From: Trichoplax adhaerens
Taxonomy: Eukaryota > Animalia > Placozoa
DNA: 64,000 nt
Reading direction: 5' to 3'
Assembly (NCBI RefSeq): GCF_000150275.1
Contig: NW_002060948.1
Location: 953,983 to 1,017,982, forward strand
In this document: in pieces, positions 14,481 to 41,833 of the stretch
Layout: each line of letters opens with the position of its first letter
Position numbering within the stretch: position 1 is the first letter of the stretch
Position numbers and translations under genes: made by a program
The notes under the pieces: generated by a model
What the model was told of the DNA's origin: nothing
Database searches by the model: none
Seen by the model: the letters and a program-made list of their open reading frames with translations, nothing else

Positions 14481-14544
14481 TTTTTAAAATCTTAGGTGAG
14501 ACTTAGTGAAAGGAATATTTCACCAAACGAAAGGAAAGATCGCA

Positions 14545-17076
14545 ATGATCCAGATTAGTATCAGTGAAATTCAAGCTAAATTAATAGAAGGCTATGGACT
14601 AATAAAAGATGCAAAGGGTAAAGATTTAGTACTGGTGATCGGTAATACCGGTGTGGGTAAAAGCACCTTTCTGAATTATATGCTAGGGTACAAAATGTAC
14701 CAAAATGAAGAATCTGATACGGTGGAGACGGTAGAGAGAGAGTGTCCCGCACATATTGGGCATAATATGCATTCACAAACTTTGTATACACATCCGATTA
14801 CAGATAAAAATTATCCTTGGGTTTTTACCGACTGTCCGGGATTTCTGGATAATAGAATGACCAATGATACGATTGTGACTTCCATTAGCATGGAATTAAC
14901 TATTCGCATTGCAAAACAAGTCAAGGGGATTGTTATACTGATGGATGCGACTGAGTTTTTAAGTAGTAGATTGACTGCTTTGGGTCCGTTGATGAAGATA
15001 TTGATTAAATTATTTCGAGATCCAGTTGAAATGTTAAAGTATTCTGTAATTGGTGTGACAAAACTAGATCAAATAAAGGGAGGAAAAACGAGGGCTAAGA
15101 AAATAACGTTACAAGGTTTGAATAAAATTAAAGAAGAATGTCGTAGAAGAATAAAAACTCTTGAGACAGAGAAGAGAGAAAGAGATGGAACAGATTTGAT
15201 TATCAGTGAATATAAAGTGATGGAAGAGTTTACTAGTGCAGTACTTGGTCGTAAAGATGATATCATGTTTATTGATATTCTTGATGATGGTGATTCAAAA
15301 CAGCTCGTAACCGATCGTATTTGTGCCATTAGATCGAGAACTGAAGCTCAAACTGATCAGTTACCACATGATACTTCTCCACCTCCAATATCAACATCTA
15401 CTAGTAATGCTCAACAAGATGCACTGCCGTTACCGCTAATTACGATCGCAGACTTCAATTTTGAAGATTATGATATCAATAGAACAAGCTTTAATAAAGC
15501 AATTTACGATTTGGCTGGTGAAGGTAATCAGCTAATCGGTGCAATTACAGGAGTTACAGATCAGCTTAAACGTGCGATTGATTTGTGGAATGATAACAAA
15601 AAGAGAATGACGTCGATGAAAAGATTGAGATCGGAGTTGGACAGTTATGTTTCTGCTTCTGAAGTCCCAACAAAATTAATAAACACTTGGTCAGAAATGC
15701 TTGAAGAAAATGAACAATCTATCCAGTCTGAAAAAAGAAAGATGCAGTCTGTTAATGACCAGTTAAAAAAATTTAAACAAGAATTGAATGAAATTAATAC
15801 TGATAAGCCCGTGATATTTGCTGAAAAGAAGTATATCAAAAAGGAGCAATATTGGACCTATCATGAAGTCCTTTTTGATTTTGATACTGAAGATGAACGG
15901 ACACCAATTGTTGATATCGATCAACGAATAGGTAGTGGTCGCTGGTGCAGTACAACAGATGAAAGGCGGAGAGGCCGATATAAAACGTGGTATCAATCTG
16001 GCTGGTGGAAAAGTGGGGATGCTACTATGACGGTTTATATTGCTTCTAAGCATGATACAGGTAATCGTAGACGTATTAAAGATCTTCGAGTAGAAATTAG
16101 TCGATGCAAAGAGTCTTTCGACGAGTTAAATGATAACGTGCTTGAGCTTAAGAAATCTAAGGAACGCATTTCATCCAATATAACATCCGTGAAAAATGTA
16201 GTCCAGGAAGAAGTAGAGAAAGATCGCACAAATAAACTACGGCAGTGTGATGGAGATATCGAGCAATTGTCTGCGCGGATGGCAGAAAATCGGAGACGTA
16301 TGGAAAAGAGTAAAGCAAAAGGTTTAGAATTACTGGAAAATTTTTACGGTGATTCTGATACTTTGAAAATGCCTGAAAAATTTGAGATTGTGCAAAGTAT
16401 CAACGAGTTGCTACGGTTTCCGAGCACTTTGGTATACAAATTTATTAAGCGCTATAAAACCTTTAAAGCGAACTTTGATGCAACTAGAAGATATTTTCAG
16501 TTAGACTTAAATGAAACGGATTTGAGTCAACTTTCTCAGGATAATACAGCAGATGAGTTAGACGATGGTGCTATTAACAAAAAAGATCCCATAACTGGTA
16601 AATGGATTAGGACACTGGTGGTAACGAAGGCAGGAACAGGATTTGAATTATCTTCATTAATGGAGCAATTTCCTATGAATAGCGTAGGCAGTGTGTTTGA
16701 GTTTACTCATCCAACGACTGGTAAAAAAGAGCGTATTCTTTACGGTGATTGGGCCCAACTGAATGAATCAGCTTCGCCTACATCCACTGAGGAAGAACAG
16801 ATTTCTCAAGTGGATCAAGTGCTTAGTATGTCATCGAATGATCCACAAGAACTCAACAGATTAAAACAAAGCGTAGAGGAAGAGATAGAAATGTTAACGA
16901 AAATTATTCAAGAGCGAGAAGAAGAACTTTTTACGAAGCAACGTCAGCTAGATAAAATCATTGAGCGCCTTAAAAGGTTTACAACAGATGAAACAACAGA
17001 AGATATTAGTTCTATGGAGGATAGTTTTGTCCAACTTGATATTACAGAGGTTTCTTCTGTTCCTACTGGTGTCTAA
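14545..17076 (+). CDS. Intronless GTPase / coiled-coil / U-box-like protein, subfamily A, copy A1
   Basis: Uninterrupted ORF; the first ATG (MIQISI) is at 14545 and aligns with the paralog starts. G1 GNTGVGKST, G2 SQT, G3 DCPG, G4 TKLD; heptad-rich segments; KDPITGKWIRTLVVTKAGTGFE; acidic tail SSMEDSFVQL. Confidence 0.9.
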   Translation: MIQISISEIQAKLIEGYGLIKDAKGKDLVLVIGNTGVGKSTFLNYMLGYKMYQNEESDTVETVERECPAHIGHNMHSQTLYTHPITDKNYPWVFTDCPGFLDNRMTNDTIVTSISMELTIRIAKQVKGIVILMDATEFLSSRLTALGPLMKILIKLFRDPVEMLKYSVIGVTKLDQIKGGKTRAKKITLQGLNKIKEECRRRIKTLETEKRERDGTDLIISEYKVMEEFTSAVLGRKDDIMFIDILDDGDSKQLVTDRICAIRSRTEAQTDQLPHDTSPPPISTSTSNAQQDALPLPLITIADFNFEDYDINRTSFNKAIYDLAGEGNQLIGAITGVTDQLKRAIDLWNDNKKRMTSMKRLRSELDSYVSASEVPTKLINTWSEMLEENEQSIQSEKRKMQSVNDQLKKFKQELNEINTDKPVIFAEKKYIKKEQYWTYHEVLFDFDTEDERTPIVDIDQRIGSGRWCSTTDERRRGRYKTWYQSGWWKSGDATMTVYIASKHDTGNRRRIKDLRVEISRCKESFDELNDNVLELKKSKERISSNITSVKNVVQEEVEKDRTNKLRQCDGDIEQLSARMAENRRRMEKSKAKGLELLENFYGDSDTLKMPEKFEIVQSINELLRFPSTLVYKFIKRYKTFKANFDATRRYFQLDLNETDLSQLSQDNTADELDDGAINKKDPITGKWIRTLVVTKAGTGFELSSLMEQFPMNSVGSVFEFTHPTTGKKERILYGDWAQLNESASPTSTEEEQISQVDQVLSMSSNDPQELNRLKQSVEEEIEMLTKIIQEREEELFTKQRQLDKIIERLKRFTTDETTEDISSMEDSFVQLDITEVSSVPTGV

Positions 17077-18009: not shown

Positions 18010-18446
18010 CTATGGAACTATATGTAATTCGTATAGTTTCCCACTGCATAAACTAGTGATTTCCATTAAAATTACAATACCCTTAACCTGACGGGTATTT
18101 CGAACCGCCAATTTAGTGCTAATAGCAGCCACAACAGAATTCTCATATGATGTGTATACTGGAAAACTTGATAAATCTGCAAAAACCCAAGGATAGTACT
18201 TACTTACAATCGGTTTAGCAAATAAAGTTTCTATTCCATGACCGATCTGAATAGTAGCAGGGCCCATAATATCTATAATCCCGAAATCGCTCTTTAGCAT
18301 TTCATGGCCTAACATGTAATTGAGAAAAGGATTTTTACCCATGTCGGCATGACCAATTGTCAACACCAAATCTTAATCTTTTGCCTGTCGTATATACTCT
18401 CAAAACCATCTTGTAACTTCTTTTGAATATTACTGATAATCGTCAT
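18010..18446 (-). pseudogene. Inverted copy of the decayed B-like GTPase relic
   Basis: Near-identical to 13481-13917, with the same frameshift and degenerate P-loop. Confidence 0.85.
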
Positions 18447-18763
18447 TACTATTTCTTGATACGCGTACACAGTTCTACTTAAGAAGGTCCGAAAAGTAAA
18501 ATACTTACAGTACTTTCAAAGAGAAAAGTGAAGGGGCACTTGGCCAAACATGTAAATAATATCGTAATTACCTATAAGAGAGTCAAGAAAACTTTCCGTA
18601 TGGCGACTTAAGCTGTAAATTATTGCAATGACTTGGTTATGTATTTACAATTTAATATACCGTTAATTGTTATGAGCCACAACCGTGAATACAGCAACCG
18701 TTTAAGAATAGAAATCTAGAGCACTCATTCACGATAAATTTGTGAAAGTTGGTATGGTACGAC

Positions 18764-20770: not shown

Positions 20771-21149
20771 NNNNNNNNNNNNNNNNNNNNNNNNNNNNNN
20801 NNNNNNNNNNNNNNNNNNNNNNNNNNNNNNNNNNNNNNNNNNNNNNNNNNNNNNNNNNNNNNNNNNNNNNNNNNNNNNNNNNNNNNNNNNNNNNNNNNNN
20901 NNNNNNNNNNNNNNNNNNNNNNNNNNNNNNNNNNNNNNNNNNNNNNNNNNNNNNNNNNNNNNNNNNNNNNNNNNNNNNNNNNNNNNNNNNNNNNNNNNNN
21001 NNNNNNNNNNNNNNNNNNNNNNNNNNNNNNNNNNNNNNNNNNNNNNNNNNNNNNNNNNNNNNNNNNNNNNNNNNNNNNNNNNNNNNNNNNNNNNNNNNNN
21101 NNNNNNNNNNNNNNNNNNNNNNNNNNNNNNNNNNNNNNNNNNNNNNNNN
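20771..21149. other. Assembly gap
   Basis: Run of N. Confidence 1.
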
Positions 21150-23099
21150 ACGGATCGTAGCATTTTATAAAAACCTGTACTAAAGGAGAGGGAAAGTCTA
21201 ATAACTCAGCGACTTCTTTAATAACTTGAAATTTCACAGGTACTCTAGCGTTATCAGGACTACCTTCGAAGAACGATTTTAACAATTGTGTACCTTTACT
21301 TTTACTTTCTTTTATTAAATTTTGATTTTCTTTAATTCTATTAGAAAGTCGATTAATTTCTTGATCACACTCTGTAATCTTCATTTCCTGATCTTTCGCC
21401 GCCTTAAGTTTCCCATCTCGTATAGATTTAACACTCTGAATCAAGATTTGGTTCGCTTCTTTAAGCTCATTTAAGCTTGCCCGTAATTCTGTTTCTTGAT
21501 TCTGCAGAGATTCTATCTCCTTGTTAATCTCTTTAATCCGTAGTTGATTACCTGTATCTTGCTTGGTTTTAATATAAGCATCTACTTTAGCATAAGCTTC
21601 AGTGAACCATTGAGAAGCATATATTGTTTTATAATAGCCCTTTTTACGTTGATCGACGGTATCGTACCAATCCCCATTTGCTTGATCTTTTTCAATAACC
21701 ATTGGAATCGATTCACTATCAGTTTTAGCCTCAAAGTTTAGTTTATTAAACCAACCTCTCCAAAAAGACCAGTCTTTAGATAGCTGCTCTGAACGAAATA
21801 GTTTAAGTTCATCCGTGTCGATTTTGGCTAACTCTCTATCTAAGGTAACTATACGTGTCTTAATAGTCCGCTTCTCTTCTGATTGCGAATTAATTGTAGT
21901 CCTATTTCGAGCGATGAGTGTCTCTGAGTTTTCTATAGAGCCAGTTGAATCTCCAGAATCATAAAATAAGCGTTGAAGATTTGATTTAAGTTCATTTAGT
22001 GTCATAATTCTAGTCTCACTTTCTTGGCAAGTGTTAATAGCACTCTTAAGTTGATTTGATTGTGTCTTGATAGCTTCTATTAGTTCGTTACCATCATGTG
22101 CGCGATCATAAATAGCCTTATTAAAAAGTATTCTTTGCTCACTGTATGTTTGAAAGTTAAAATCCTTCACAGTAAGACGTTTAACTTTCTCTTGCTTATC
22201 TTTATCATGATCAGAGCTCAAGGGTCCGAAAGACGAGGGAAAAGAACGCACAGCAGAGACTATTTGATTATACAATTTTTTCGATTTATGTGGCCTAATT
22301 CCTTTAATCAGTTCGATAACTCTTTCTCTGGACTGGCCTTCATCTAAGGGTTTAACAAATACTATATCATCTTGCTTTTGAAGTATAGCAGCAACAAAAG
22401 CCTTAATAAATGCAAAATCTTCCGGTGTCGGGGCAGATGCTGAATGTAAATCATCAGCTAAAGGAGATTTACTTCTTTCATACCTATTTTTAAGTATTTC
22501 TAGATTTCCATCACAATTCTTTTCGATTTTTTTAAAGCTTGCAAAATTCTTTGCTTTGTAGTCTCTTCTGTCAGTCCTAGAGAATCTACTTTTGTTATAG
22601 CCACGATGGAATAATTCGCCATATCCATTGGGCTCTTAAAGAGCGAAATTAGTGTCTTCACTAATTGACTTAACTCATTTAGTCTTGCAGAGAGTAAAGT
22701 ATGGACTTCTATTAAAATCACAACAGCCTTAACCTGACGAGCATTTCGAACCGCCAATTCAGTACTAATAGAACTTACGACAGCATCACTTGATATTCTA
22801 TTATCTTGAAATCCGGGACAATCTGTATAAACCCAAGGATAGATCTCGCTGACAAATGGCGTAGCGTATAAAGTTTCTGACTCCATTTCATGGCCGATCT
22901 TAAAGGTGGCAGGCTGCACCGTATCTATATTTCCAGTATTTTGGTCCTGACACATTTTATGCTCTAGCATGTAGTTCAGAAAAGTACTTTTGCCAACGCC
23001 AGTATTACCAATAGCTAACACTAAATCTTTACCTTCGCCCTTCCGAGTATGTTCAAAACCATTTTCTAACTTCTTTAGAATCTCGTTGATGCTCGTCAT
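21150..23099 (-). pseudogene. Copy B2 of the subfamily-B GTPase, with a 1-nt frameshift and its 3' end in the gap
   Basis: ORFs 22500-23099 and 20755-22275 are near-identical to 29646-32168. Near 22535, caagctttaaaaaaatcg replaces caaggttttaaaaaaatcg (-1 nt). This sits beside a homopolymer, so it could be a sequencing error. Confidence 0.75.
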
Positions 23100-24350: not shown

Positions 24351-24670
24351 ACGCTTACGATTACCTGTATCATGCTTAGAAGCAATGTAAACCGTCATAA
24401 TTAGCATAGTAGCGTAATACTATCCTAGTCACTATTCTTCGTGGCATTCGCCAACAATTTCTTTTGCAGTCTATTCATAATGCACCATAAGATAATATGC
24501 TACATATGCAACTGTATTATACAATACTATTAGTATAGATAGTATTGCGCTACATCAGGTAACGTCAGAACATAGCGGTACGATTAGAAGTACGTATCAT
24601 GTATTATCAATAGAATCTTAGGTGAGACTTAGTGAAAGGAATATTTCACCAAACGAAAGGAAAGATCGCA

Positions 24671-26408
24671 ATGATCCAGATTAGTATCAGTGAAATTCAA
24701 GCTAAATTAATAGAAGGCTATGGACTAATAAAAGATGCAAAGGGTAAAGATTTAGTACTGGTGATCGGTAATACCGGTGTGGGTAAAAGCACCTTTCTGA
24801 ATTATATGCTAGGGTACAAAATGTACCAAAATGAAGAATCTGATACGGTGGAGACGGTAGAGAGAGAGTGTCCCGCACATATTGGGCATAATATGCATTC
24901 ACAAACTTTGTATACACATCCGATTGCGGATAAAAATTATCCTTGGGTTTTTACCGACTGTCCGGGATTTCTGGATAATAGAATGACCAATGATACGATT
25001 GTGACTTCCATTAGCATGGAATTAACTATTCGCATTGCAAAACAAGTCAAGGGGATTGTTATACTGATGGATGCGACTGAGTTTTTAAGCAGTAGATTGA
25101 CTGCTTTGGGTCCGTTGATGAAGATATTGATTAAATTATTTCGAGATCCAATTAAAATGTTAAAGTATTCTGTAATTGGTGTGACAAAACTAGATCAAAT
25201 AAAGGGAGGAAAAACGAGGGCTAAGAAAATAACGTTACAAGGTTTGAATAAAATTAAAGAAGAATGTCGTAGAAGAATAAAAACTCTTGAGACAGAGAAG
25301 AGAGAAAGAGATGGAACAGATTTGATTATCAGTGAATATAAAGTGATGGAAGAGTTTACTAGTGCAGTACTTGGTCGTAAAGATGATATCATGTTTATTG
25401 ATATTCTTGATGATGGTGATTCAAAACAGCTCGTAACCGATCGTATTTGTGCCATTAGATCGAGAACTGAAGCTCAAACTGATCAGTTACCATATGATAC
25501 TTCTCCACCTCCAATATCAACATCTACTAGTAATGCTCAACAAGATGCACTGCCGTTACCGCTAATTACGATCGCAGACTTCAATTTTGAAGATTATGAT
25601 ATCAATAGAACAAGCTTTAATAAGGCAATTTACGATTTGGCTGGTGAAGGTAATCAGCTAATCGGTGCAATTACAGGAGCTGTAGATCAGCTTAAACGTG
25701 CGATTGATTTGTGGAATGATAACAAAAAGAGAATGACGTCGATGAAAAGATTGAGATCGGAGTTGGACAGTTATATTTCTGCTTCTGAAGTCCCAACAAA
25801 ATTAATAAACACTTGGTCAGAAATGCTTGAAGAAAATGAACAATCTATCCAGTCTGAAAAAAGAAAGATGCAGTCTGTTAATGATCATTTAAAAAAATTT
25901 AAACAAGAATTGAATGAAATTAATACTGATAAGCCCGTGATATTTGCTGAAAAGAAGTATATCAAAAAGGAGCAATATTGGACCTATCATGAAGTCCTTT
26001 TTGATTTTGATACTGAAGATGAACGGACACCAATTGTTGATATCGATCAACGAATAGGTAATGGTTGCTGGTGCAATACAACAGATGAAAGGCGGAGAGG
26101 CCGATATAAAACGTGGTATCAATCTGACTGGTGGAAAAGGGGATGCTACTATGACGGTTTACATTGCTTCTAAGCATGATACAGGTAATCGTAGGCGTAT
26201 TCAAGATCTTCGAGAAGAAATTAGTCGATGCAAAGAGTCTTTCGACGAGTTAAATGATAACGTGCTTGAGCTTAAGAAATCTAAGGAACGCATTTCATCC
26301 AATATAACATCCGTGAAAAATGTAGTCCAGGAAGAAGTAGAGAAAGATCGCACAAATAAACTACGGCAGTGTGATGGAGATATTGACCAATTGTCTGCGC
26401 GGATGGCA
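24671..26408 (+). pseudogene. Copy A2 of the subfamily-A GTPase, with a 2-nt frameshift and its 3' end in the gap
   Basis: Near-identical to A1. At about 26139, tggaaaaggggatgct replaces tggaaaagtggggatgct; homology continues in another frame (ORF 26061) up to the gap. Confidence 0.78.
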
Positions 26409-27345
26409 NNNNNNNNNNNNNNNNNNNNNNNNNNNNNNNNNNNNNNNNNNNNNNNNNNNNNNNNNNNNNNNNNNNNNNNNNNNNNNNNNNNNNNNNNNNN
26501 NNNNNNNNNNNNNNNNNNNNNNNNNNNNNNNNNNNNNNNNNNNNNNNNNNNNNNNNNNNNNNNNNNNNNNNNNNNNNNNNNNNNNNNNNNNNNNNNNNNN
26601 NNNNNNNNNNNNNNNNNNNNNNNNNNNNNNNNNNNNNNNNNNNNNNNNNNNNNNNNNNNNNNNNNNNNNNNNNNNNNNNNNNNNNNNNNNNNNNNNNNNN
26701 NNNNNNNNNNNNNNNNNNNNNNNNNNNNNNNNNNNNNNNNNNNNNNNNNNNNNNNNNNNNNNNNNNNNNNNNNNNNNNNNNNNNNNNNNNNNNNNNNNNN
26801 NNNNNNNNNNNNNNNNNNNNNNNNNNNNNNNNNNNNNNNNNNNNNNNNNNNNNNNNNNNNNNNNNNNNNNNNNNNNNNNNNNNNNNNNNNNNNNNNNNNN
26901 NNNNNNNNNNNNNNNNNNNNNNNNNNNNNNNNNNNNNNNNNNNNNNNNNNNNNNNNNNNNNNNNNNNNNNNNNNNNNNNNNNNNNNNNNNNNNNNNNNNN
27001 NNNNNNNNNNNNNNNNNNNNNNNNNNNNNNNNNNNNNNNNNNNNNNNNNNNNNNNNNNNNNNNNNNNNNNNNNNNNNNNNNNNNNNNNNNNNNNNNNNNN
27101 NNNNNNNNNNNNNNNNNNNNNNNNNNNNNNNNNNNNNNNNNNNNNNNNNNNNNNNNNNNNNNNNNNNNNNNNNNNNNNNNNNNNNNNNNNNNNNNNNNNN
27201 NNNNNNNNNNNNNNNNNNNNNNNNNNNNNNNNNNNNNNNNNNNNNNNNNNNNNNNNNNNNNNNNNNNNNNNNNNNNNNNNNNNNNNNNNNNNNNNNNNNN
27301 NNNNNNNNNNNNNNNNNNNNNNNNNNNNNNNNNNNNNNNNNNNNN
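26409..27345. other. Assembly gap
   Basis: Run of N. Confidence 1.
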
Positions 27346-28624: not shown

Positions 28625-28940
28625 GCGTATTGCCCGGCCAAAGTCCAGCAAATCCTAGATTTCGGACTTTGGCCGGGCCAATACGCGTAATGGCCGAGTC
28701 ACACACGGCCAAAGCCCGATTGGCTATTGTTCACAATAATCGTAGTTTACACAGTACGTAATGTCGCCGGTAGCAACAAAGTAAGTAACATTACTGACCA
28801 TATTAGCTTGCGTATTACGCGTATTGGCCGGCCTAGTTTGGTCTATACGCGTATTGGCCCGGCCAAAGTCCGAAATCTAGGATTTGCTGGACTTTGGCCG
28901 GGCAATACGCGTATTGGCCAACTTCGGGTTTTGGCCGTAA
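28625..28940. repeat. GC-rich nested inverted repeat (foldback/MITE-like)
   Basis: 28625-28689 is the reverse complement of 28846-28910. Each arm is itself a hairpin (cccggccaaagtcc...ggactttggccggg). Confidence 0.85.
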
Positions 28941-29174
28941 TATCGCGCTATAAACGATATTTTGAACAGATGTAGACATTGCTACGATTGCGGAAGGACC
29001 TCTACGTACTCTTCATAGAGCAACATAGAGCTGACCATGATTAAAAAGCGGTGTTGGCAAGCATAAGCCAATCTTTTCCAGAGACTGGCATTGAGATTTA
29101 TTTATTCGCGGTAATTGCAAAAGCCAATTTCACCGTATTATTTACAGTACAGTACTGTATATTAGCATACTGTA

Positions 29175-29363
29175 CATTAGGCCTGATCATTTTGCATAGA
29201 TTTTTTTATACACTTCGTTTAAGCTGTCCTACTGATACATTAGACATGTATTGACATATCTAGAAAAAAATAAAGAAATCGTCCAATCTCACGCGGCGCA
29301 AATCAAATTTGTGTCCTGCATCATCCCCGTGCGAGAAATTATTTTAAATGATCAGGCCTACTG
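29175..29363. mobile_element. Tc1/mariner-type MITE, 189 bp
   Basis: TA|CAtTAGGCCTGATCATTT ... AAATGATCAGGCCTACTG|TA: an 18-bp TIR with 1 mismatch, a CAGT-type end and TA flanks. Confidence 0.72.
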
Positions 29364-29645
29364 TACATGTTTTAGCGCATTTTGCATAATTTATTGATTT
29401 TGTTGTTTGAATCGATCAGATGCGCCATAGGGCATCACCGATAAACGCCCCAAGCCAATAATCAATTCTATTTGAACCAATCAGATGGTTAAATATGTAT
29501 TTCATCCGTATATTTTAGTAATTTTTTAAAGAAAAATAAACTCAGTAGATTTAAAGAAAATAATCTCGGTAGCAAAGAAAAATTGCTACCGAGAAATAAA
29601 TGTCAGTAGAAAGTGAAGTAAACTGTAAAAGGTTTCGCATAAAAG

Positions 29646-32168
29646 ATGACGAGCATCAACGAGATTCTAAAGAAGTTAGAAAATGGTTTTGAACATACTC
29701 GGAAGGGCGAAGGTAAAGATTTAGTGTTAGCTATTGGTAATACTGGCGTTGGCAAAAGTACTTTTCTGAACTACATGCTAAAGCATAAAATGTGTCAGGA
29801 CCAAAATACTGGAAATATAGATACGGTGCAGCCTGCCACCTTTAAGATCGGCCATGAAATGGAGTCAGAAACTTTATACGCTACGCCATTTGTCAGCGAG
29901 ATCTATCCTTGGGTTTATACAGATTGTCCCGGATTTCAAGATAATAGAATATCAAGTGATGCTGTCGTAAGTTCTATTAGTACTGAATTGGCGGTTCGAA
30001 ATGCTCGTCAGGTTAAGGCTGTTGTGATTTTAATAGAAGTCCATACTTTACTCTCTGCAAGACTAAATGAGTTAAGTCAATTAATGAAGACACTAATTTC
30101 GCTCTTTAAGAGCCCAATCGATATGGCCAATTATTCCATCGTGGCTATAACAAAAGTAGATTCTCTAGGACTGACAGAAGAGACTACAAAGCAAAGAATG
30201 TTGCAAGGTTTTAAAAAAATCGAAAGGAATTGTGATGGAAATCTAGAAATGCTTAAAAATAAGTATGAAAGAAGTAAATCTCCTTTAGCTGATGATTTAC
30301 ATTCAGCATCTGCCCCGACACCGGAAGATTTTGCATTTATTAAGGCTTTTGTTGCTGCTATACTTCAAAAGCAAGATGATATAGTATTTGTTAAACCCTT
30401 AGATGAAGGCCAGTCCAGAGAAAGAGTTATCGAACTGATTAAAGGAATTAGGCCACATAAATCGAAAAAATTGTATAATCAAATAGTCTCTGCTGTGCGT
30501 TCTTTTCCCTCGTCTTTCGGACCCTTGAGCTCTGATCATGATAAAGATAAGCAAGAGAAAGTTAAACGTCTTACTGTGAAGGATTTTAACTTTCAAACAT
30601 ACAGTGAGCAAAGAATACTTTTTAATAAGGCTATTTATGATCGCGCACATGATGGTAACGAACTAATAGAAGCTATCAAGACACAATCAAATCAACTTAA
30701 GAGTGCTATTAACACTTGCCAAGAAAGTGAGACTAGAATTATGACACTAAATGAACTTAAATCAAATCTTCAACGCTTATTTTATGATTCTGGAGATTCA
30801 ACTGGCTCTATAGAAAACTCAGAGACACTCATCGCTCGAAATAGGACTACAATTAATTCGCAATCAGAAGAGAAGCGGACTATTAAGACACGTATAGTTA
30901 CCTTAGATAGAGAGTTAGCCAAAATCGACACGGATGAACTTAAACTATTTCGTTCTGAGCATCTATCTAAAGACTGGTCTTTTTGGAGAGGTTGGTTTTA
31001 TATATTAGACTTTGAGGCTAAAACTGATAGTGAATCGATTCCAATGGTTATTGAAAAAGATCAAGCAAATGGGGGTTGGTACGATACCGTCGATCAACGT
31101 AAAAAAGGCTATTATAAAACAAAATATGTTTCTCAATGGTTCACTGAAGCTTATGCTAAAGTAGATGCTTATATTAAAACCAAGCAAGATACAGGTAATC
31201 AACTACGGATTAAAGAGATTAGCAAGGAGATAGAATCTCTGCAAAATCGAAAAACAGAATTACGGGCAAGCTTAAATGAGCTTAAAGAAGCGAACAAAAT
31301 CTTGATTCAGAATATTGAATCTATACGAGATGGGAAACTTAAGGCGGCGAAAGATCAGGAAATGAAGATTACAGAGTGTGATCAAGAAATTAATCGACTT
31401 TCTAATAGAATTAAAGAAAATCAAAATTTAATAAAAGAAAGTAAAAGTAAAGGTACACAATTGTTAAAATCGTTCTTCGAAGGTAGTCCTGATAACGCTA
31501 GAGTACCTGTGAAATTTCAAGTTATTAAAGAAGTCGCTGAGTTATTAGACTTTCCCTCTCCTTTAGTACAGGTTTTTATAAAATGCTACGATCCGTTTAT
31601 AAAACAGCAGCTATCTGATATTCGTAAACTTTTTGAGATTAATCCTGCTACGATTAATTTTAGCACATTACCTACTCAAGCGGTCCCTGAATGTGATGAG
31701 GACATTGGTCCTAAAGATCCTATAACGAGTCAACGAATTATAACTCCGGTAGTAACTGATGCTGGCACCCTATTTGATTTACAATCATTGCGTAAATGCT
31801 TTCCTGAACATCCTACTAAAGAAGATGTATATGAATTCTCCCACTATGACGGACGAGTAGAGCATATTCACTATTTATGCTGGAAACAAATCGGTAATCT
31901 TAGTGAATATTTGTATCAGAGAAGAAGACAGACATCTCCAGAAAAACGTCACTCATTTATTAACATACCGAGTGATTTAAATGAGTTACTCAGAATACAA
32001 TACGATCTTCAGCAAGAAATAGCTTGTATAGAAAAGGAATTTAAGGCGGCGATGGATAAAAAGCAAATAGAATTAGAGAAGATTAATACACAGATTCAAT
32101 CGCTTCATATATCAGAATCATCGGATAAAGATACTTTCAGTGATGAAGAATATGAGATTGTATCTTAA
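29646..32168 (+). CDS. Intronless GTPase / coiled-coil / U-box-like protein, subfamily B, copy B1 (840 aa)
   Basis: G1 GNTGVGKST, SET, DCPG, TKVD; Trp-rich insert DWSFWRGWF...GGWYD...YVSQWF; PKDPITSQRIITPVVTDAGTLFDLQSL; tail SDEEYEIVS*. Confidence 0.92.
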   Translation: MTSINEILKKLENGFEHTRKGEGKDLVLAIGNTGVGKSTFLNYMLKHKMCQDQNTGNIDTVQPATFKIGHEMESETLYATPFVSEIYPWVYTDCPGFQDNRISSDAVVSSISTELAVRNARQVKAVVILIEVHTLLSARLNELSQLMKTLISLFKSPIDMANYSIVAITKVDSLGLTEETTKQRMLQGFKKIERNCDGNLEMLKNKYERSKSPLADDLHSASAPTPEDFAFIKAFVAAILQKQDDIVFVKPLDEGQSRERVIELIKGIRPHKSKKLYNQIVSAVRSFPSSFGPLSSDHDKDKQEKVKRLTVKDFNFQTYSEQRILFNKAIYDRAHDGNELIEAIKTQSNQLKSAINTCQESETRIMTLNELKSNLQRLFYDSGDSTGSIENSETLIARNRTTINSQSEEKRTIKTRIVTLDRELAKIDTDELKLFRSEHLSKDWSFWRGWFYILDFEAKTDSESIPMVIEKDQANGGWYDTVDQRKKGYYKTKYVSQWFTEAYAKVDAYIKTKQDTGNQLRIKEISKEIESLQNRKTELRASLNELKEANKILIQNIESIRDGKLKAAKDQEMKITECDQEINRLSNRIKENQNLIKESKSKGTQLLKSFFEGSPDNARVPVKFQVIKEVAELLDFPSPLVQVFIKCYDPFIKQQLSDIRKLFEINPATINFSTLPTQAVPECDEDIGPKDPITSQRIITPVVTDAGTLFDLQSLRKCFPEHPTKEDVYEFSHYDGRVEHIHYLCWKQIGNLSEYLYQRRRQTSPEKRHSFINIPSDLNELLRIQYDLQQEIACIEKEFKAAMDKKQIELEKINTQIQSLHISESSDKDTFSDEEYEIVS

Positions 32169-34651
32169 AAGTACTTTGTATCTCTTACTCCATGTTCCAC
32201 ATAGTTAGCGATGATTTATTACTATAGTATTAAGCTAGTTGTACCAATGTATGTGTACATGATTTGAGTAATGTTATCATTCCTATTAGAATTCATTGTT
32301 AATTGATAGATATTTGTTAATTCAAATAACTTTACGACATTATTATCTTGTGATGTCTCTTGAATTAATTGCTAAAATTTATAATAAGCATATATTAATT
32401 CTTAGAGGTATTTTTCTACTATTTGATAGACTTGCTTGGCATTCAGGAAATGTCGAATTTGTTGTTTAATTTTTCGAGAAATAAGTAAAAAATGACTCAA
32501 TTAACATCTAGTAATCCATATGATAATAGCCATATACAGCATATCATTCGCAGGGTAATTTGCAATAGTACTGTATACTACATTTAAACGGCAGGTTTAC
32601 TAGTAGATATTAATAATTTTAGTAATTCATTACGGTTCTTAAATTAGTAAATTGTTACAGATATTTGATGTAAAGATGAAGATTAGGGCAAAGATAATAA
32701 CGATGGTAATAAATTCTTAAGATACGGGTCATTGATGTTAACATTTAAATATTGTCAATTTGGCTGCCAGTACTATAACATATCGATACAAAACTTTGTT
32801 GCCGTTGGTTCCCAATTATAATGAACAATTATTGTCATAATAACACTAGTTCATTACGGTACTCAAATTCTGTTAAAATTTAGTCGATTTTTATTACTAA
32901 TGACATCTGAAAAAAGAGGTTATAATAGGGATAGTAGAATTTTTTATATAAGTACCTACTATTCATATTCTTTTCCTTAGTGCAAGTAATTTATACGAAT
33001 AGATAGGTATATTAGCCCCCACTGGTCCACAATAGAGTAAATTTCAGTCGAACTCATTATAAGGTTTTAATGGCAAATAATGCTAGAATCCTATTAAATG
33101 ATAAGTACATAATTTTAACTAAAAGGTAAGGTAATTAGGTAAGTGATTACTACAAAATAAGCTACAACATCGACTTCACTTTTACTTTCTAAAAGGAGTT
33201 ACTGCGCCTCTAACAATTAACCCACAATGGCTACTATAAACCATATCATATCATAGTTATACCGCTACAATGAATTCGATATCAGCTCTGATAGCATTAG
33301 GCGATCGGTATCATTATTGATCTAGTATTGTGCGTATAAAAAGGAGATGCTTATTAGATACGCGTATTTTCGGTAAGCAACCTATTTATTAACCTTATCA
33401 ATTTCTGGAAGATATTCTACCAGTGTATTACTTATTTAACGTAGTAGTTATTCTCGCATTATTTCCTATTTATAATTGGTATCATTTATCAGCCTTATAA
33501 TATTAATCTATGTGCGACTACAGCATTATTTGATTATTGTTAAATTATCGTAGTTGTTCACAGTTGAATTTCTAATAAAAATCTTGTGAGAAAAAATTTG
33601 ATGGTATAATTTCATTTGTAAACTTTTAAATACTTAACATAGTGTAAAATCTTTCCAATTTTTACATACTTTCACCTGATTTGGCTAATTTCCTATTTTC
33701 AACTGTTCATAATAATACTCTGCGCCCTGTTACACGGAAGTATGTAGTGTTAATCCTACAATAAACTGTTTTCGATCTGGTTTCTATCCTACAGTACCTC
33801 ATAAATAATTATGTATCTTTGAGCGGTAAGTTTTCAATTAAATAACATGTTAGGAATTAGCAACATGAATTATCATTTCATAATAAGATGTAATGATTTG
33901 CATGGACAACATATGGTTATACAGTACCGACGTAAATATAAAATCCTAAGGCGATGATTTACAATAAGATGCCGCCCAATATAAGTGCTAGATATCTTTT
34001 GCTATTATACGAATTCCATACGAGTCCAAGAGTACCATATAAACAAAAGTACATTTGTGTAAACTATCTCGAGGGAATATTGCACTAGTTTACATAAAGA
34101 TGCGATTGATATGCCTACTCCAAGTTCATGGTCTGGGTTAAGCTCAAGTAGTTCGTGAGCTAAAATCAATAAGTCTGGAATTTAAGAGATACTCACTGAA
34201 TCTCTTGTGTAAGCTGTCGTACTCGATCTAGGCGCACAATGCTCGTATACTGCATTGAGGATCTCTAATAATGAATTACATATTCGAGCAACTACACTTG
34301 GAAAGATGACCTTCCAGACTATTTCCTTTACACATTTCAGATTGCGACTTTACAACACTAATCAATGCCGTCATCGTGATGTAAAGCCATAAGTAAGTGA
34401 TTAAAATTCTTCTATTGCTTATTTACAATATTGAACCTTATGCTTTGAATCGACCAGTAGTAAACAGCTACATAACGATGTCTCTTGTTTACATTATGAC
34501 CGGATAAGTCATTCTAAAGTTTTCTTTCTAGTTAGTGTCAGGTATTAGCTCTTTATTTAGTTTTTTGCGTTTTCAAAAAAAATTGCTATCGGTCGAGCCA
34601 TAGTTGAAATCCAGTGGAAAGGAATTCTAATAAGTAAAAGGAGGGATCACC

Positions 34652-37231
34652 ATGCCTGCGATAGAAATCAGTGAGATACAAGCCAAATTGGCAGCTGGTT
34701 TTAAACTAACACAACAAGCCAATGGCAAAGACTTAGTTCTGGTGATCGGTAATACTGGTGTGGGTAAAAGCACCTTTCTTAACTATATGTTGGGGCATAC
34801 AATGCGTGAAAATGAAGAATTAGATGTGATAGAGGCCGTAGAGACGTCTGCCTTACACATTGGCCATGAGATGCGTTCAGAGACTTTATACGCACGGCCG
34901 GTTGTGAGTCAAGACTATCCTTGGGTTTTTACCGACTGTCCGGGATTTTTGGATAACAGAATAACCAATGATACAATTGTGACTTCTATTAGTATGGAAT
35001 TAGCGATTCGTAGTGCAAATCAGGTCAAAGGAATTATTATCTTGATGGATGCAACTGAGTTTTTGAATAGTAGATTGAGTACTTTAAGTCCATTGATGAA
35101 GATATTGATTAAATTGTTTAGAGATCCAGTTGAAATGTTAAAGTATTCTGTAATTGGTGTGACCAAAACGGATAAGATGAAAGGTGGAAAAACAAAATCT
35201 AAAAGAATGATGGTGCAAGCTTTTGGTAAAATCAAAGAAGAATGTCAGAGAAAAATACAGACTCTTCAGTCAGAATTTGAAAGACAAGGTCATAAAGCTT
35301 TCTTTTCTATAGGGAGTGAGAATAAAGAGGAAAGCGATCTGAGAGAATTAACTGTTAGCGACTATAAAGTGATGACAGAATATATCAGTGCAGTACTTAG
35401 ACGACAAGATGAGATCGTTTTTATTGATGTTCTTGATGACGGCGATTCAAAGCAACACATTATTGATCGTATTCATGCAATTAGGCCGAGAACTGAAGCT
35501 CAAACGGGCCACTCACTACAGGATACTCTTCCAACTGCGTTATCAGCATCCGCTGAATACTTGCAGCTAGATACTTTATCGCTACGGCCTATTACAGTAG
35601 CAGATTTTAATTTTGAGCATTATGATGTAAATAGAAGACACTTTAATCTTGCTATTTATGATTTTGCTAGTGAAGGTAGCCGATTAATTGGTGCGATCAT
35701 AGGGGTAGCAAATCAACTGAAACGCATGATCGATATGTGGCAAGACAACAAAATTAGAATGGCGGCATTGAATAAACTAAAATCAGAGTTACAAAATTAT
35801 ATCTCTGTTTCTGAAGGCCCAAGGAAATTATTGAATACCTGGTCAGAAATGCTTTCAGAAAATGCTCAATCCATTCAATCAGCGCAAGAAGATATTCATT
35901 CGATTAAAAATCAGATAAAAAAGCATGAACAAGAATTGAATGAAGTTAATACTGATAAACCCATAAAATTTGCGGAAAAAATATATCTCAAAAAAGAGTG
36001 GTATTGGACCCACCATAAGGAACTCTTCAAGTTTGATACTGAAAATGAATCAGTACCAATAGTCGATGTAGACAAACACATAGGTAATGGTTGCTGGTGT
36101 TATACGAAAGATGAAAGAAAAAAAGGCCGATATAAATCGTTATATCTATCAGACTGGCTGGCGTACGGGGATGCTAGAATAACTGTTTACATTGCTTCTA
36201 AGGATGAAGAAGGCAACCGTAAGCTCGTTAGAGATCTTCAGACAGAAATTCATCGATCTGGAGAACTCTTGGCTGAGATACAAGCTAATCTATCGTTGCT
36301 TGAAGAATCTAAAGATCGTTTATTATCCAGTATAAAATCGATGGAAAATGTAGTTCAGGAAGAAGTAGAAAAGGATCGAGCTGATAAAATGTTGCAATGT
36401 GATGGAGAAATTGAGCAGTTATCTGCTCGTATGACAGAAAATCGAAAGCAGATAAAAATGACTAAAGCAAAGGCTTTAAAATTATTGAAAAAATTTTGTG
36501 ATGATTCTGAATCTTTAAATATCCATAAAAAATTTAAAATTGTCAAAAGTATTAATGAGTTACTACAACTACCAGGCACTTTAGTGGATAAATTCATTGA
36601 ACGTTATGAGGGGTTTAAAGCTGAGTTTAAAACCATACAAAAATGTTTTCGGATAGACTTAGATAAGGAAGATTTGAGCCAATTTTCGCAAGATAATTCA
36701 ACGGATCAATTAGATAGAGCTATAAATAGAAAAGATCCAATAAGTGGTAAATGGATTAGGACGCTGGTAGTAACAAAAGCAGGAACAGGATTTGAATTAT
36801 CTTCCTTAGTGGAGCAATTTCCTGAGAATTGTATAGGGAGCGTTTTTGAATTTATTCATCCTACTGGTAAAAAAGAGCGCATTTTTTATGGTGATTGGAC
36901 TATCATGTCTGAATGGCCCGCACTTACAGGGCAAGAAGAGAGATTTTCTCAAGCCGATCAAGTACTTGGTATGTCATCGAATGATCCACTGGAATTGATC
37001 AAAGTGAAAAAGAGTGTAGAGGAAGAGATAGAGTTGTTAGTGCAAGGTATTCAAGAGCAAGAAGAGGAACTCTTTGCAAAGCGAGATCAGTTAAAAAAAA
37101 TCACCGAACGTCTTAAAGGGCTTGGCTTTTTACTTTCAGTAGATGAAACCGAAGAGACTAGTTCCATTGATAGTAGTTTTATCCAAATAGATGCTATAGA
37201 TACTTCCTTTATTCCTGATGTTAGCGCATAA
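34652..37231 (+). CDS. Intronless GTPase / coiled-coil / U-box-like protein, subfamily A, divergent copy A3 (859 aa)
   Basis: Collinear with A1: GNTGVGKST, DCPG, TKTD; KDPISGKWIRTLVVTKAGTGFE; tail IDSSFIQID. Confidence 0.92.
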   Translation: MPAIEISEIQAKLAAGFKLTQQANGKDLVLVIGNTGVGKSTFLNYMLGHTMRENEELDVIEAVETSALHIGHEMRSETLYARPVVSQDYPWVFTDCPGFLDNRITNDTIVTSISMELAIRSANQVKGIIILMDATEFLNSRLSTLSPLMKILIKLFRDPVEMLKYSVIGVTKTDKMKGGKTKSKRMMVQAFGKIKEECQRKIQTLQSEFERQGHKAFFSIGSENKEESDLRELTVSDYKVMTEYISAVLRRQDEIVFIDVLDDGDSKQHIIDRIHAIRPRTEAQTGHSLQDTLPTALSASAEYLQLDTLSLRPITVADFNFEHYDVNRRHFNLAIYDFASEGSRLIGAIIGVANQLKRMIDMWQDNKIRMAALNKLKSELQNYISVSEGPRKLLNTWSEMLSENAQSIQSAQEDIHSIKNQIKKHEQELNEVNTDKPIKFAEKIYLKKEWYWTHHKELFKFDTENESVPIVDVDKHIGNGCWCYTKDERKKGRYKSLYLSDWLAYGDARITVYIASKDEEGNRKLVRDLQTEIHRSGELLAEIQANLSLLEESKDRLLSSIKSMENVVQEEVEKDRADKMLQCDGEIEQLSARMTENRKQIKMTKAKALKLLKKFCDDSESLNIHKKFKIVKSINELLQLPGTLVDKFIERYEGFKAEFKTIQKCFRIDLDKEDLSQFSQDNSTDQLDRAINRKDPISGKWIRTLVVTKAGTGFELSSLVEQFPENCIGSVFEFIHPTGKKERIFYGDWTIMSEWPALTGQEERFSQADQVLGMSSNDPLELIKVKKSVEEEIELLVQGIQEQEEELFAKRDQLKKITERLKGLGFLLSVDETEETSSIDSSFIQIDAIDTSFIPDVSA

Positions 37232-38031
37232 GCGTATTTTCTTAGAATAATTAGTGCAAAATCTTCGCTAGACTAACACATAGAATATTCAAGAATCTTA
37301 CTCGAATCTTTATTGATAATAAAGTTCTTTGGAGAATATTAGCAATTCCCACTATTGAACACTCGTTTATACTATCTATCGAGACTCGCTTACCCCCTGC
37401 ACGCCGACTAATGTTAGTTGTTATTTACTTGCGCGTGTATTCAAGTTCCAATTTATGTCAGCATATAACCATCGGATCGATGTAATTATAGTTCAGTAGT
37501 TGTTGTTGTCGAGTATTGTGGATATAGCTAGCTAGGCATTTGATAAATAAAGAAAGTTACTTTACACGATTACCGACTGGAGTATATTACAGATTTACAC
37601 TATCGACTACTAGTAATTTTAGTAGTCCATACTTTATACTGTCTTGTGTGGCATGATTGATCTCGCTAATTTATATATAGCAATTTGATTCAAGCGTACT
37701 ACCAAACTAATAAAAAATCACTTTGGCGATGTTAGTTTGATTGACCAATATTGATTGATTTTGAATTATTATTAATATTTATCCTGATATGCTGGTACTC
37801 TACGGTAGAGATTATCCAAACTTTTACTTGAGGGAATTAGGTTAATTGTTTTACCATTATAGTGATAATAAATAAATATAATTAAGGATGTCTCGGAAGA
37901 GCGCAGCACATAAATGAATATATTAGCGTATGTAACTAAAATATCGATAGTGTAGTAAAAGACCAGGGAGATATTTCTTTTCACTTCGAGGATTTGTATA
38001 TATAATCATTAGTAATCAATACAATATCGCA

Positions 38032-40020
38032 TTGGTTATAGGTAATACGGGCGTTGGTAAAGGCACTTTCGTCAATTATATGCTTAGGCATGAAATGTTC
38101 AGAGATGCAGAATCTGCAGCTGTAGATACCTATGGTCCTGCTACCTTTACGATCGGTTATGAAATGCGGCCAGAAATCTTATATGCGAAGCCATTTCTAA
38201 GCGAGAAATATCCCTTGGTTTTCAAAGATTTCCCCAGATTTCAAGATAATAGATTATCAAGCGATGCAGTTGTGACTTCTATTAGCACTGAATTGGCGGT
38301 TCGAAATGCTCATCAGGTTAAAAGTAATTTTAATGGAAATCAATAGTTTGCTCGGTACGAGACTACCTGACTTAAATCAAATGGCGAAGACACTGATTAC
38401 GCTTCAAGAGGCCAGTCGATATGAGAATGAGTAACTACTGTAATCTTTATATGGGTATTAGTTGCTTTCTAGTCGATTTCTTCAATAATTCATGCTTTAT
38501 CATAAGAATCTATGTAGCCTACATCTTGCATTCTCGATCAGATCAACAGAAGAGAAGACTAATTTCTTACCCTATTGCAATACTTTAAATACAGTACGGT
38601 GCTCGTACTACGAGCATATTGCAAATTCTTAATTTCTCATGTGTCTGCAACGTCAATGAAAATACACATACTATATGACGAATTATAATTATTAAATCAT
38701 AGTATGAATGTTTGGCCATTTCAGTCAGTCCACATAGAGACTAAGCAATTTGTTTTAACTGGCAGCAATCAATGCCTGTTGTCGCACGATACCAACCACA
38801 AAGATTTACTTCTTGTACTTGACTATTGAATGTGATCAAGCAGTGAATTAATTTCCTACTTGCTGATCACATTACTATCCTATTGTGGAAAAACGCGAAT
38901 CCGGAAGCTCATTGACCTAAATTTTAATCTTTAAACTGAAAAAAAACGCGAAGTCCGGAAATGATTAAAGATTTTAACTTTCAAGCTTATTGCGAGCAGA
39001 GAATATCATTTAATATAGCTATTTATAACTATGCGCATAATGGCAATGTACTAATAGGAGATTAAAGAGCAGTCTAAGCAACTAAAAAATGCTATTAAAA
39101 CATATCAGGAGAGTAAGAATCGGTCCGAGGCACCAAAAACTTTGAAATCAGACCTTGAGAATCACCTTTCTGGTTCAGAAGATTCAACTAATTCAATAAA
39201 AACATCGGAAGAAATCCCAACTCAAAATAATCAATTAAAGAACATGAGGTAAAGCTATTGAGAAGGAAAAAACTAAATTACGTAGAGAAGTAACTGGTAT
39301 TGATACAGATGACCTCATGCTATTTCGTTCAGCTTCTCTTTCTAAAAATTGGACTTTATGGCATAGTTGTTTTTTACGATAGAGTTTAAGGCTGATACCA
39401 ACGCTAAGTGGATATCAGTCAGTGTACATACTGAGGAGAAAATGGACAGTGGCACAATACAGTAGATTGATCGAAAGGTTATTATAAAACAAAATTCCGT
39501 TCTAAATGGTATGTTAAAGCTTATGCGAAAATGGAAGCTTATATCAAAACCAGACACGATGCAGGTAATCAACTTCGGATCCAAAAGATTATCATGAAGA
39601 TAAAATCACTTAAGAGTAAAAAAAAATAAATTAGAAACAAGTTTAGAAAAGCTTAAAAAGGAAAACAAAGTCCTAAATCAAAATACGTATTCAATCTTTA
39701 CATGATGGAAATCTTAATGCAGAAAATAATCGAGAAGATTGCGAAATGTGATCAAGAAATTAAACAGCTTTCTGGTAGAATTGAATCAAGCCGAAGTTTG
39801 ATTGAAAAGAATAAGTAGGTACACGACTATTGGATTCACTTTTTTTAAAGTGTTCCCGATAAGGCCACAGTACCGTAGAAATTCCGGCTTATGAGAGAAA
39901 TTGCGGAGTTGTTAGACTTTCCATCCCATTTTAATACAAGTCTTCGTGAAGCCAGATAATCATTTTATAAAAGATCAGCTTCCTTTTCTTCGCTAGCTTT
40001 TTGAGATAAATCCTGATAAG
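38032..40020 (+). pseudogene. Heavily decayed near-full-length B-like paralog
   Basis: G-domain fragment at 38032-38420 (IGNTGVGKGT, FQDNR.SSDAVV). Frameshifted remnants at 38960-40020: KDFNFQAYCEQRISFN, IDTD, KCDQEIKQLSGRIE, AELLDFPS, FEINP. Confidence 0.85.
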
Positions 40021-41833
40021 GCTGTGTCACAAATTTCTTCTTCGTGAACGGTTAACTCCTCTAGCAACTAATATCCTAATACATTCGAGGTACGTATAGG
40101 CAATGAATTACTCGAAAAAGTATTCCGTTAAAATGTTTACTATATCGCTCGACGAGCCTTTCTAACTACTGATTTTCGGAACAACTAGTCGTTGTGAGCT
40201 CGCTCCTTTTATGCTCTCTGGGAGCGGCCGCTGGTGCATTCTAACAAACTGAGCTCTAATCATTTTCTTCGTTTAGTGCAAGATTACATCTTACAATCAA
40301 TAATAGGACTCAGTATAGTCAAAATTGGTAAACAACATTAATTAGAATAAACCAATTAAGAACCAATTAGAGCTTTGAAGCTCTAAGCAATTTCCACAGG
40401 TGCAAGTAATTACCAGTTAGATTACTTAATAAATGTTTCAAGAAATAGCTTATTTTTGCTGAAATTAAATAGATGCAGTAAAACAGTTTTGATATTTCTA
40501 TCTTGTAATCTATCTTTGTAATTGATAATTTAACTTTCCGGATATACTGAAATTTACTGGAACTATACATAATTATAGTAAACTTAATCCCTTTTGTTTC
40601 TTTCTAATATCTATTTTAGGAATAGCATAATCAACTGTTCCAAGTATAAATTTAAGCGTACATCCTGCATAATCTAGAAACATCATCAAAAAGTATGTTA
40701 CTCAAATGTTAATCATACGTTTGGTTTAAAGTTTAATTCCCGTTCATTTAAACAGGCAGTCTACGAATATCTCATGATAAAAGCTGATTGGGTAAAAACG
40801 GGAAATTTTTTCTTTCAAAAATTAATCAAATTGATACGATCTTCCTATTCTTACCTCATCATATAGTACAGAAAATTCCATCACCCTAAAATTTAACATG
40901 TCGAGTAGCTCTTTTTATCCTTTTAAATCTCTGTTTTGTTTGCATTGCGGAGCTGGTAGCCGACATAACATTCCTAGTCCACTAGGTCTGTATGAAAAAG
41001 GGCTAGTAGAGGCGGTAGATAGAGTCGGTTTTCGGTTTGCTGAAGTAGCACTTGCCTCGGGAGTGGTCTGGCTTTCTGATGTTATTGCAGTTGTAGACAC
41101 TTACATAGCATATAACTCTTAGATGAAAGCTTATAGCTAGATAGTTTAACTCGTTAACGAAGTTTTACATATACTAACCTATTTAATTTCGTAAAACTAA
41201 TTCTATGTTAACAGTCCTCTTACTCATACTAGAAATGGCAGGGTATCATTAAATTTTAAAGCCACCTTTCGATGCAATTTGCTAAATAACAATCAAATTA
41301 CGGCAAACTAAAGCATTAGACACGCTACATTGGCAAGTGGATTTATTTACGTATAAGACGTGAGAATATAATAATTACAATGCTATACAAAAATCACAGA
41401 GGAGTATTCTCTTTAATGTTAAAATATAGAAATAGTTAGTTACGCTACATCAATTTTGATGATAAATTGTATATTTTTAATTAAATTTTAATTTCTACAT
41501 AGATTAGAAAGTATTGATAGTCTATTTTGTCTACTTTATGATAGATTTTTTATTGTAACAGTTCGATATCATAATTACACGACATTATCAGCTGTTAATA
41601 AAATAAAATAAATCATTTGTGAAATATAAGTAACAAGTCGGTATTATAAGGATTAAAGCCAACAAATCCTGGAAAAAAGGCATAAATATTCAGCAAATTA
41701 TGCTAGATACAGCAGGAGTTTATTTAATGTCATTATTTTGATATTGCCGAAGTTGTTGTAGGTTAAAAATTGATTTTGTTCTTTTGTTATTATCCGTGAA
41801 TCTATCAATTGCAAGACGGTAATACTTCTTATA

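Follow-up and report, generated by a model that had tools for sequence, protein, structure and literature searches.

Older-divergence islands between near-identical GTPase genes of Trichoplax adhaerens, a probable conversion or haplotype mosaic

Near-identical gene copies that differ in one short patch are found in a cluster of intronless GTPase genes of the placozoan Trichoplax adhaerens. The cluster lies in a stretch of 64,000 nucleotides (nt) of contig NW_002060948.1 (positions 953,983 to 1,017,982, forward strand), referred to here as the window. Two of its members, B1 and the inverted copy B2, differ mainly in a patch that covers most of a tryptophan-rich insert and the helix that follows it. 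A first-pass annotation, made from the sequence alone, interpreted the insert as a specificity surface under diversifying selection, analogous to loop L4 of MxA. This interpretation of the patch is not supported. The patch is best explained as an island of older divergence within inverted and otherwise homogenized copies, and is probably the product of a gene-conversion or haplotype mosaic in a cluster evolving by birth and death. This explanation is based on the observed clustering of substitutions, the nonsynonymous and synonymous counts, the polarity of the changes, the frameshifts, a mosaic in a second pair of copies (A1 and A2) and the conservation of the domain concerned; conversion as the homogenizing process, and the functional status of B2, are what we infer.

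The comparison of B1 with the reverse complement of B2 covers 1951 coding nt. Here and in the other analyses the frameshift breaks in B2 and A2 were marked with an N, and neither gene was repaired. The copies are separated by 27 substitutions and one 1-nt insertion or deletion (indel), and 18 of the 27 substitutions fall within 362 nt, a clustering that none of 100,000 permutations equalled (P<1e-5). All of the replacements listed in the first-pass annotation are present, and all 14 lie in nt 30956-31317. From B1 to B2 they read H439Q, Y452N, I453K, D455N, G477D, K493I, V495A, S526N, R535Q, K536E, K551Q, N556S, I557V and E558K, and they are accompanied by synonymous changes at codons S437, L454, K487 and Q533. 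The patch is bordered by identical sequence on both sides. Upstream, the identity covers 231 codons, more than the ~160 amino acids previously claimed, and this longest identical run has a permutation P of 2.5e-4; downstream, the two genes are identical up to the N gap, as had been stated, and their downstream flanks are 99.5-100% identical. Transitions outnumber transversions by 12:6 in the patch, which fits real substitutions and not read errors. A second divergent block, located in the G domain, had been overlooked. It contains the indel, a 1-nt deletion in B2 between 22538 and 22539, opposite B1 30207 and in a TTTT context, which shifts the frame at codon 188 and leaves B2 with open reading frames of 199 and 495+ amino acids in different frames.

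By the Nei-Gojobori method, the patch (S=70.7, N=295.3, Sd=4, Nd=14) has proportions of synonymous (pS) and nonsynonymous (pN) differences of 0.057 and 0.047, with pN/pS at 0.84-0.85; the nonsynonymous rate is not above the synonymous one. The split between the two classes is consistent with a ratio of nonsynonymous to synonymous rates (dN/dS, omega) of 1 (p=0.77) and is also indistinguishable from an omega of 0.4 (p=0.23). Comparison with the remainder of the gene is more informative. Synonymous changes number 4 per 70.7 sites in the patch versus 2 per ~335 outside (odds ratio 9.9, ~10-fold, Fisher p=0.0098), and nonsynonymous changes 14 per 295.3 versus 7 per ~1246 (~9-fold, p=2e-6). Both classes are therefore raised about equally, which is the very outcome that the first-pass annotation had named as speaking against its own interpretation. 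The sliding-window analysis that it proposed shows no elevation at the insert either: between the paralogs A1 and C, for which the synonymous divergence (dS) is 0.87, omega is 0.27 over the whole gene and 0.24-0.40 in windows over codons 435-560. On the intact lineages, changes in the region amount to three nonsynonymous and no synonymous in B1 and to four and one in A1; summed, these 7 + 1 changes inside the region compare with roughly 11 + 6 outside and are too few to test.

The polarity of the changes was established with the B ortholog of Trichoplax sp. H2 (locus L025), whose locus is syntenic with the window from 28940 to 42163 at 99.6% identity. In the patch, 15 of the 18 states are derived in B2 (4 synonymous, 11 nonsynonymous) and three in B1 (G477, S526 and K551). 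The G-domain block behaves similarly, with eight of nine substitutions and the indel derived in B2, the changes on B2 being six nonsynonymous and two synonymous. With such a pN/pS, a neutral fit and most changes carried by a frameshifted copy, the insert does not have the profile of a surface under diversifying selection. Outside the islands, B1 and B2 share states that are unlike H2 at 29702, 29862, 29864, 30506 and 30597. The affinity within the triplet thus switches along the gene, from B1=B2 versus H2 between the islands to B1=H2 versus B2 inside them. Genes of the cluster are kept between Trichoplax H1 and H2 under purifying selection; dS between the orthologs is 0.008-0.010, and omega equals 0.45 in B and 0.15 in C. 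The patch pS is ~6 times this dS, and the patch is therefore about six times older than the H1/H2 split; the sequence around it, judging from the states shared by B1 and B2, is younger. Strain sampling comprises these two lineages, since the protein clusters of A, B, the TRIADDRAFT_57164 model, C and an N-terminal fragment hold H1 and H2 sequences only.

A parallel mosaic is observed in the A copies. The differences noted in the insert between A1 and A2 (S477N, R479C, S482N and G499D) are all real, and the A1-derived replacements S477, R479, S482 and G499 lie at nt 15935-16001. A2 has lost 2 nt at 26139-26140, opposite A1 16013-16014, and is truncated at 513 amino acids; an independent copy, A4, located on a separate scaffold (C1311), carries the identical deletion, which is therefore probably real. 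The intact H2 gene TrispH2_003248 has its syntenic counterpart in A2, and given a real deletion in A2, A1 is probably the sole intact A copy in H1. Along the A triplet, the H2 gene is A2-like at 14800-16038 and A1-like at 16071-16263. Over 16333-16961 it departs from A1 once more and agrees with A4, which alone among the A2-type copies extends over these positions. The affinity switches twice along the sequence, and the recombination check suggested earlier gives a positive answer in both triplets, as affinities relative to the H2 outgroup change in A and in B. The mosaic of the A triplet provides independent evidence that copies in the locus have exchanged sequence.

The position of the patch in the protein was examined on AlphaFold2 (AF2) models. 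The full-length model of B1 is mediocre (predicted local distance difference test, pLDDT, 67), while residues 310-650, modelled with a 23-sequence alignment, reach a pLDDT of 88 and a predicted template modelling score of 0.79. In the latter model, helices 321-380 and 386-427 are followed by six beta strands (432-511) and by helices 516-561 and 568-610. The proposed location of the insert at the tip of an antiparallel hairpin agrees with this prediction, in which the beta domain stands between helices 386-427 and 516-561. When the variable residues are mapped, the picture of a variable insert is not retained: seven of the 14 replacements are in helix 516-561. The structural comparison with VIA-align superposes ~100 residues of helices 386-427 and 516-561, over model positions 73-255, on two-helix antiparallel hairpins of moesin, CHMP4B, IpaB, chemoreceptors and the SMC and Rad50 arms (1.3-2 Å, Z 10-12); such Z values are common for helical models and reveal arrangement, nothing on kinship. 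A Foldseek search with the modelled stalk found nothing at E<=0.001, and its weak top rows, namely flagellins, the ClyA-type toxins NheA and Mak, and SMC arms, share just a long hairpin with a distal domain.

The beta domain is alignable in full-length bacterial homologs, and among 21 family members only the G domain is better conserved; the beta domain has invariant F456, T460, G476, W478, D483, G488, Y490, Y494 and S496. Its first loop (~443-452, DWSFWRGWFY) is aromatic and of lower model confidence. Dynamin-like proteins have membrane-inserting tips, and by analogy the aromatic loop may be a site of membrane or partner contact. The column right before the invariant Trp (NG-x-W motif) differs in both pairs of copies: residue 477 (nt 31074-31076) is G in B1 and D in B2 and H2, and residue 479 of A1 (nt 15940-15942) is R in A1 and C in A2, H2 and paralog C. 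The analogy with MxA holds in part. In B1, as in MxA and MxB, the predicted architecture is a GTPase leading into a long antiparallel helical stalk whose distal end bears a non-helical element, so that the tip position stands as a feature of the model. The idea of a hypervariable loop does not stand: Mx loop L4 is disordered, variable in length and recurrently shows omega above 1, whereas the element of B1 is a folded beta domain of 80 residues, conserved from bacteria to placozoans, with omega at 0.24-0.40. The G domain of B1, moreover, resembles GIMAP/AIG1 and not dynamin.

According to the mosaic explanation, B1 would be a conserved, presumably functional gene and B2 an older duplicate now bearing a frameshift, most of which, together with its flanks, would have been overwritten by recent gene conversion with B1 (now 0-0.5% diverged). 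Two tracts would have escaped conversion, 29781-30262 (~2% diverged) and 30956-31317 (~5%), in which silent and replacement sites have diverged about equally, roughly neutrally and for the most part in B2. That the island coincides with the Trp-rich beta domain would reflect where the tract boundaries fell, because the island also spans the whole following helix. Decayed copies abound in the locus, as illustrated by the A2 frameshift, the pseudogene D and the N-terminal fragments. Comparable mosaics of identical tracts alternating with short islands of older divergence result from gene conversion between paralogs in palindrome arms and in young birth-and-death clusters; the likeness extends to silent and replacement sites being equally hit, to triplet and outgroup affinities that switch, and to pseudogenized copies standing beside intact ones. 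The present case differs in that neither donor nor recipient tract can be pointed to, and in that B2 is classed as a paralog on the basis of a 2008 scaffold with many gaps.

Several observations weigh against this explanation. No donor or reciprocal tract is identifiable; pseudogene D (~70% identical) was considered as donor of the B2 patch and rejected, as it shares just four of the 15 B2-derived states. The deletion in B2, which falls within a short run of T, could stem from misreading. Only one A and one B are present in the assembly of H2, so that an old B2 requires its loss or collapse there. Finally, at 0.84 the pN/pS of the patch slightly exceeds the mean of the family, 0.27 (p about 0.03-0.06); relaxed constraint could produce such an excess, but so could a degree of positive selection.

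There is some chance, if a modest one, that B2 and the whole segment 12890-23566 represent a second haplotype or structural variant, scaffolded as an inverted duplicate in the 2008 Sanger assembly. The patch would then correspond to deeply diverged alleles, and the identical tracts to places where the two alleles do not differ. N gaps adjoin both B2 (20771-21149) and A2 (26409-27345). Scaffold C1311 (14955 nt; loci L023 and L024), which consists mostly of Ns, holds an alternative A, an alternative B, fragments and flanks, whose order disagrees with that of the main scaffold. The genes, present here in a third version riddled with gaps, are 98-99.8% identical, and the scaffold likely contains leftover second-haplotype reads; it also links B1-type upstream and coding sequence, identical to B1 at 7/7 patch sites in 31244-31317, to a B2-type downstream flank. 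The independently assembled H2, with its single A and B, lacks the segment and joins the equivalents of window positions 12890 and 23566 directly (L025 3110-3224), skipping A1, two N-terminal fragments and B2; the segment is either specific to H1, or collapsed or lost in H2. Conversely, the B2 flank departs from homology with the B1 flank at 19534/33632 into different sequence, a junction found in the main scaffold as well as in C1311, the gene order and orientation of the extra segment are not colinear with A2-B1, and the mosaic of the A triplet implies two A lineages predating the H1/H2 split. With paralogs and haplotypes alike, the patch is a historical feature at the level of tracts.

It is unlikely that the tip beta domain and adjoining helix form a recognition surface whose copies or alleles are kept different by diversifying or balancing selection despite homogenization elsewhere. 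Such selection would accord with the modelled tip position and exposed aromatic loop, with the preponderance of replacements on the intact lineages (B1 3 versus 0 synonymous; A1 4 versus 1), with the column preceding the invariant Trp having changed in both pairs (B1 G477 versus D; A1 R479 versus C) and with a patch pN/pS above the family mean, and linked synonymous divergence would also rise under balancing selection. The pN/pS does not exceed 1, however, 15 of the 18 changes are on a frameshifted copy, half of the replacements are in the helix outside the insert, and the G-domain block shows a like pattern, with its six nonsynonymous and two synonymous changes on B2. In addition, the A1-C omega stays at 0.24-0.40 over codons 435-560, the domain is conserved down to bacterial homologs, and the counts on intact lineages are too small for a test. 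It is a more doubtful idea still that, in a GTPase/U-box family of bacterial derivation domesticated by placozoans, the tip beta domain serves recognition or membrane contact and that balancing or diversifying selection preserves its old variants while gene conversion between copies continues; if true, one of the simplest animals would possess an arms-race surface of the Mx-L4 kind. As to false differences caused by low-quality sequence close to a contig end, they are highly improbable. The patch lies ~280 nt from the B2 assembly gap, but the 279 nt beside the gap are identical to B1, and the independent H2 assembly agrees with B1 at 15 sites and with B2 at the other three. On account of this agreement, the ratio of transitions to transversions and the lack of indels in the patch, sequencing error is rejected as its source.

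The positions of these features, and of the other genes used in the comparisons, are given in Table 1.

Table 1. Position of the genes, tracts and predicted domains in the window
Feature	Position	Strand	Description
B1	29646..32168	+	Intact intronless open reading frame of 840 amino acids; GTPase domain, coiled-coil stalk bearing the beta domain, U-box-like C-terminal region
Second divergent block, G domain	29781..30262	+	9 substitutions and the 1-nt indel between B1 and B2
Identical B1/B2 tract upstream of patch	30263..30955	+	693 nt
Beta domain (Trp-rich insert), coding	30939..31178	+	Residues 432-511, predicted from AF2 models; exposed aromatic loop ~443-452
Divergent patch in B1	30956..31317	+	18 substitutions: 14 nonsynonymous, 4 synonymous
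Helix 516-561, coding	31191..31328	+	Predicted descending arm of the hairpin; 7 of 14 replacements
Identical B1/B2 tract downstream of patch	31318..31596	+	279 nt, reaching the B2 assembly gap
B2	21150..23099	-	Inverted near-identical B1 copy, frameshifted, cut off by assembly gap 20771-21149
Divergent patch in B2	21429..21790	-	15 of 18 states derived, polarized by the H2 ortholog
A1	14506..17076	+	Intact paralog of 856 amino acids
A2	24632..26408	+	Near-identical A1 copy; 2-nt deletion ~26139; enters N gap 26409-27345
C	34652..37231	+	Intact paralog of 859 amino acids, used for the deep dN/dS comparison

The genes of the cluster are intronless open reading frames of ~850 amino acids, read without recourse to spliced models; three of them are intact, and several decayed copies, including the pseudogene D, and several N-terminal fragments accompany them. 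A protein search of the whole genome of 105.6 Mb in 1414 contigs found members of this GTPase family on this scaffold and on C1311 only. The B1 protein is 99% identical to TrispH2_003250 of Trichoplax sp. H2, and protein searches with the window also returned TRIADDRAFT_57164 of T. adhaerens. Inverted repeats of 97-99% identity flank A1 (13164-13949 / 17978-18763 and 12902-13168 / 19123-19389) and contain N-terminal gene fragments; such a palindrome-like layout could favour inversion and conversion. Positions 59387-60122 are occupied by a tandem array, not related to the GTPase genes, in which a ~224-nt unit (reported as overlapping copies of 288 nt) occurs three times at 89-96% identity.

In B1, MMR_HSR1 is the Pfam match above threshold, whereas AIG1 and Dynamin_N are weak and under their gathering thresholds; for the G domain of the full-length AF2 model, Foldseek ranked GIMAP2 and GIMAP7 highest. 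Membership of the dynamin family is not indicated, with Dynamin_N at a sub-threshold E of 0.0095-0.039 and a Foldseek probability to dynamin of 0.69 with a template modelling score of 0.16. The likeness to GIMAP/AIG1-type and dynamin-superfamily TRAFAC GTPases concerns the Pfam and Foldseek matches of the G domain; nothing in those families corresponds to the beta-domain-bearing stalk or to the U-box-like C-terminus. In the bacterial relative P0016, residues 701-775 match the Pfam U-box PF04564 (35.8 bits versus a cut-off of 21.4). The homologous segment of B1 comprises residues about 685-760 (nt 31700-31925). The C-terminus of B1 has no U-box match, so the domain appears to be degenerate at the sequence level in placozoans. 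A sequence search of the PDB gave nothing relevant and NCBIfam nothing above cut-off. In the literature, no paper names TRIADDRAFT_57164 or describes the placozoan cluster.

The full-length relatives of the family are bacterial. A profile search of 1.84 billion representatives returned 2596 relatives, 107 of them at E<1e-30. The full-length collinear ones (P0004, P0009 and P0011-P0015) originate from metagenomes and have 27-38% identity to the closest compared sequence. More generally, the uncharacterized metagenomic bacterial GTPase/coiled-coil/U-box proteins (P0004, P0009-P0016) match the placozoan genes over their full length, beta domain included, at 25-38% identity. They differ in the canonical U-box of P0016, compared with a sub-threshold C-terminus in placozoans, and in genomic setting, which is either a plasmid-like contig or a chromosomal site with Ank-patatin or LRR genes as neighbours. 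The gene contexts examined are bacterial in three of three cases: P0004 shares a plasmid-like contig with a MobA/TraI relaxase, ProQ, ParA and PhD/PIN, P0016 lies on a chromosome beside tig-clpP-clpX-lon, and P0011 adjoins a gene for an Ank-patatin protein of 1456 amino acids. For these relatives, the ESM Atlas returned generic MMR_HSR1/AIG1 clusters only, with scores below 0.85, and a pattern scan of genome contigs at least two matches, which were weak.

In a FastTree phylogeny, placozoan A, B and C constitute one clade (support 1.0) among the bacterial relatives. The whole cluster (window 13500-40000) appears to be of bacterial origin. Topology and gene context point to a likely single transfer from a bacterium to placozoans, with duplication preceding the H1/H2 split and birth and death with conversion coming afterwards. 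Contamination is rejected as the source of the genes in view of the 5.98-Mb scaffold, the adjoining DRC7 gene and the synteny in H2.

The patch is a classic illustration that a mosaic left between young duplicates by conversion or by haplotypes can mimic a selected hotspot when amino-acid differences alone are read. The adaptive hotspot does not hold, and the probably horizontally acquired gene family is of greater interest. The cluster, to date recorded in placozoans alone, is composed of genes that lack introns and have their full-length relatives in bacteria. Provided that the genes are expressed, they would represent the domestication by an animal of a bacterial effector-type GTPase/E3-like protein.

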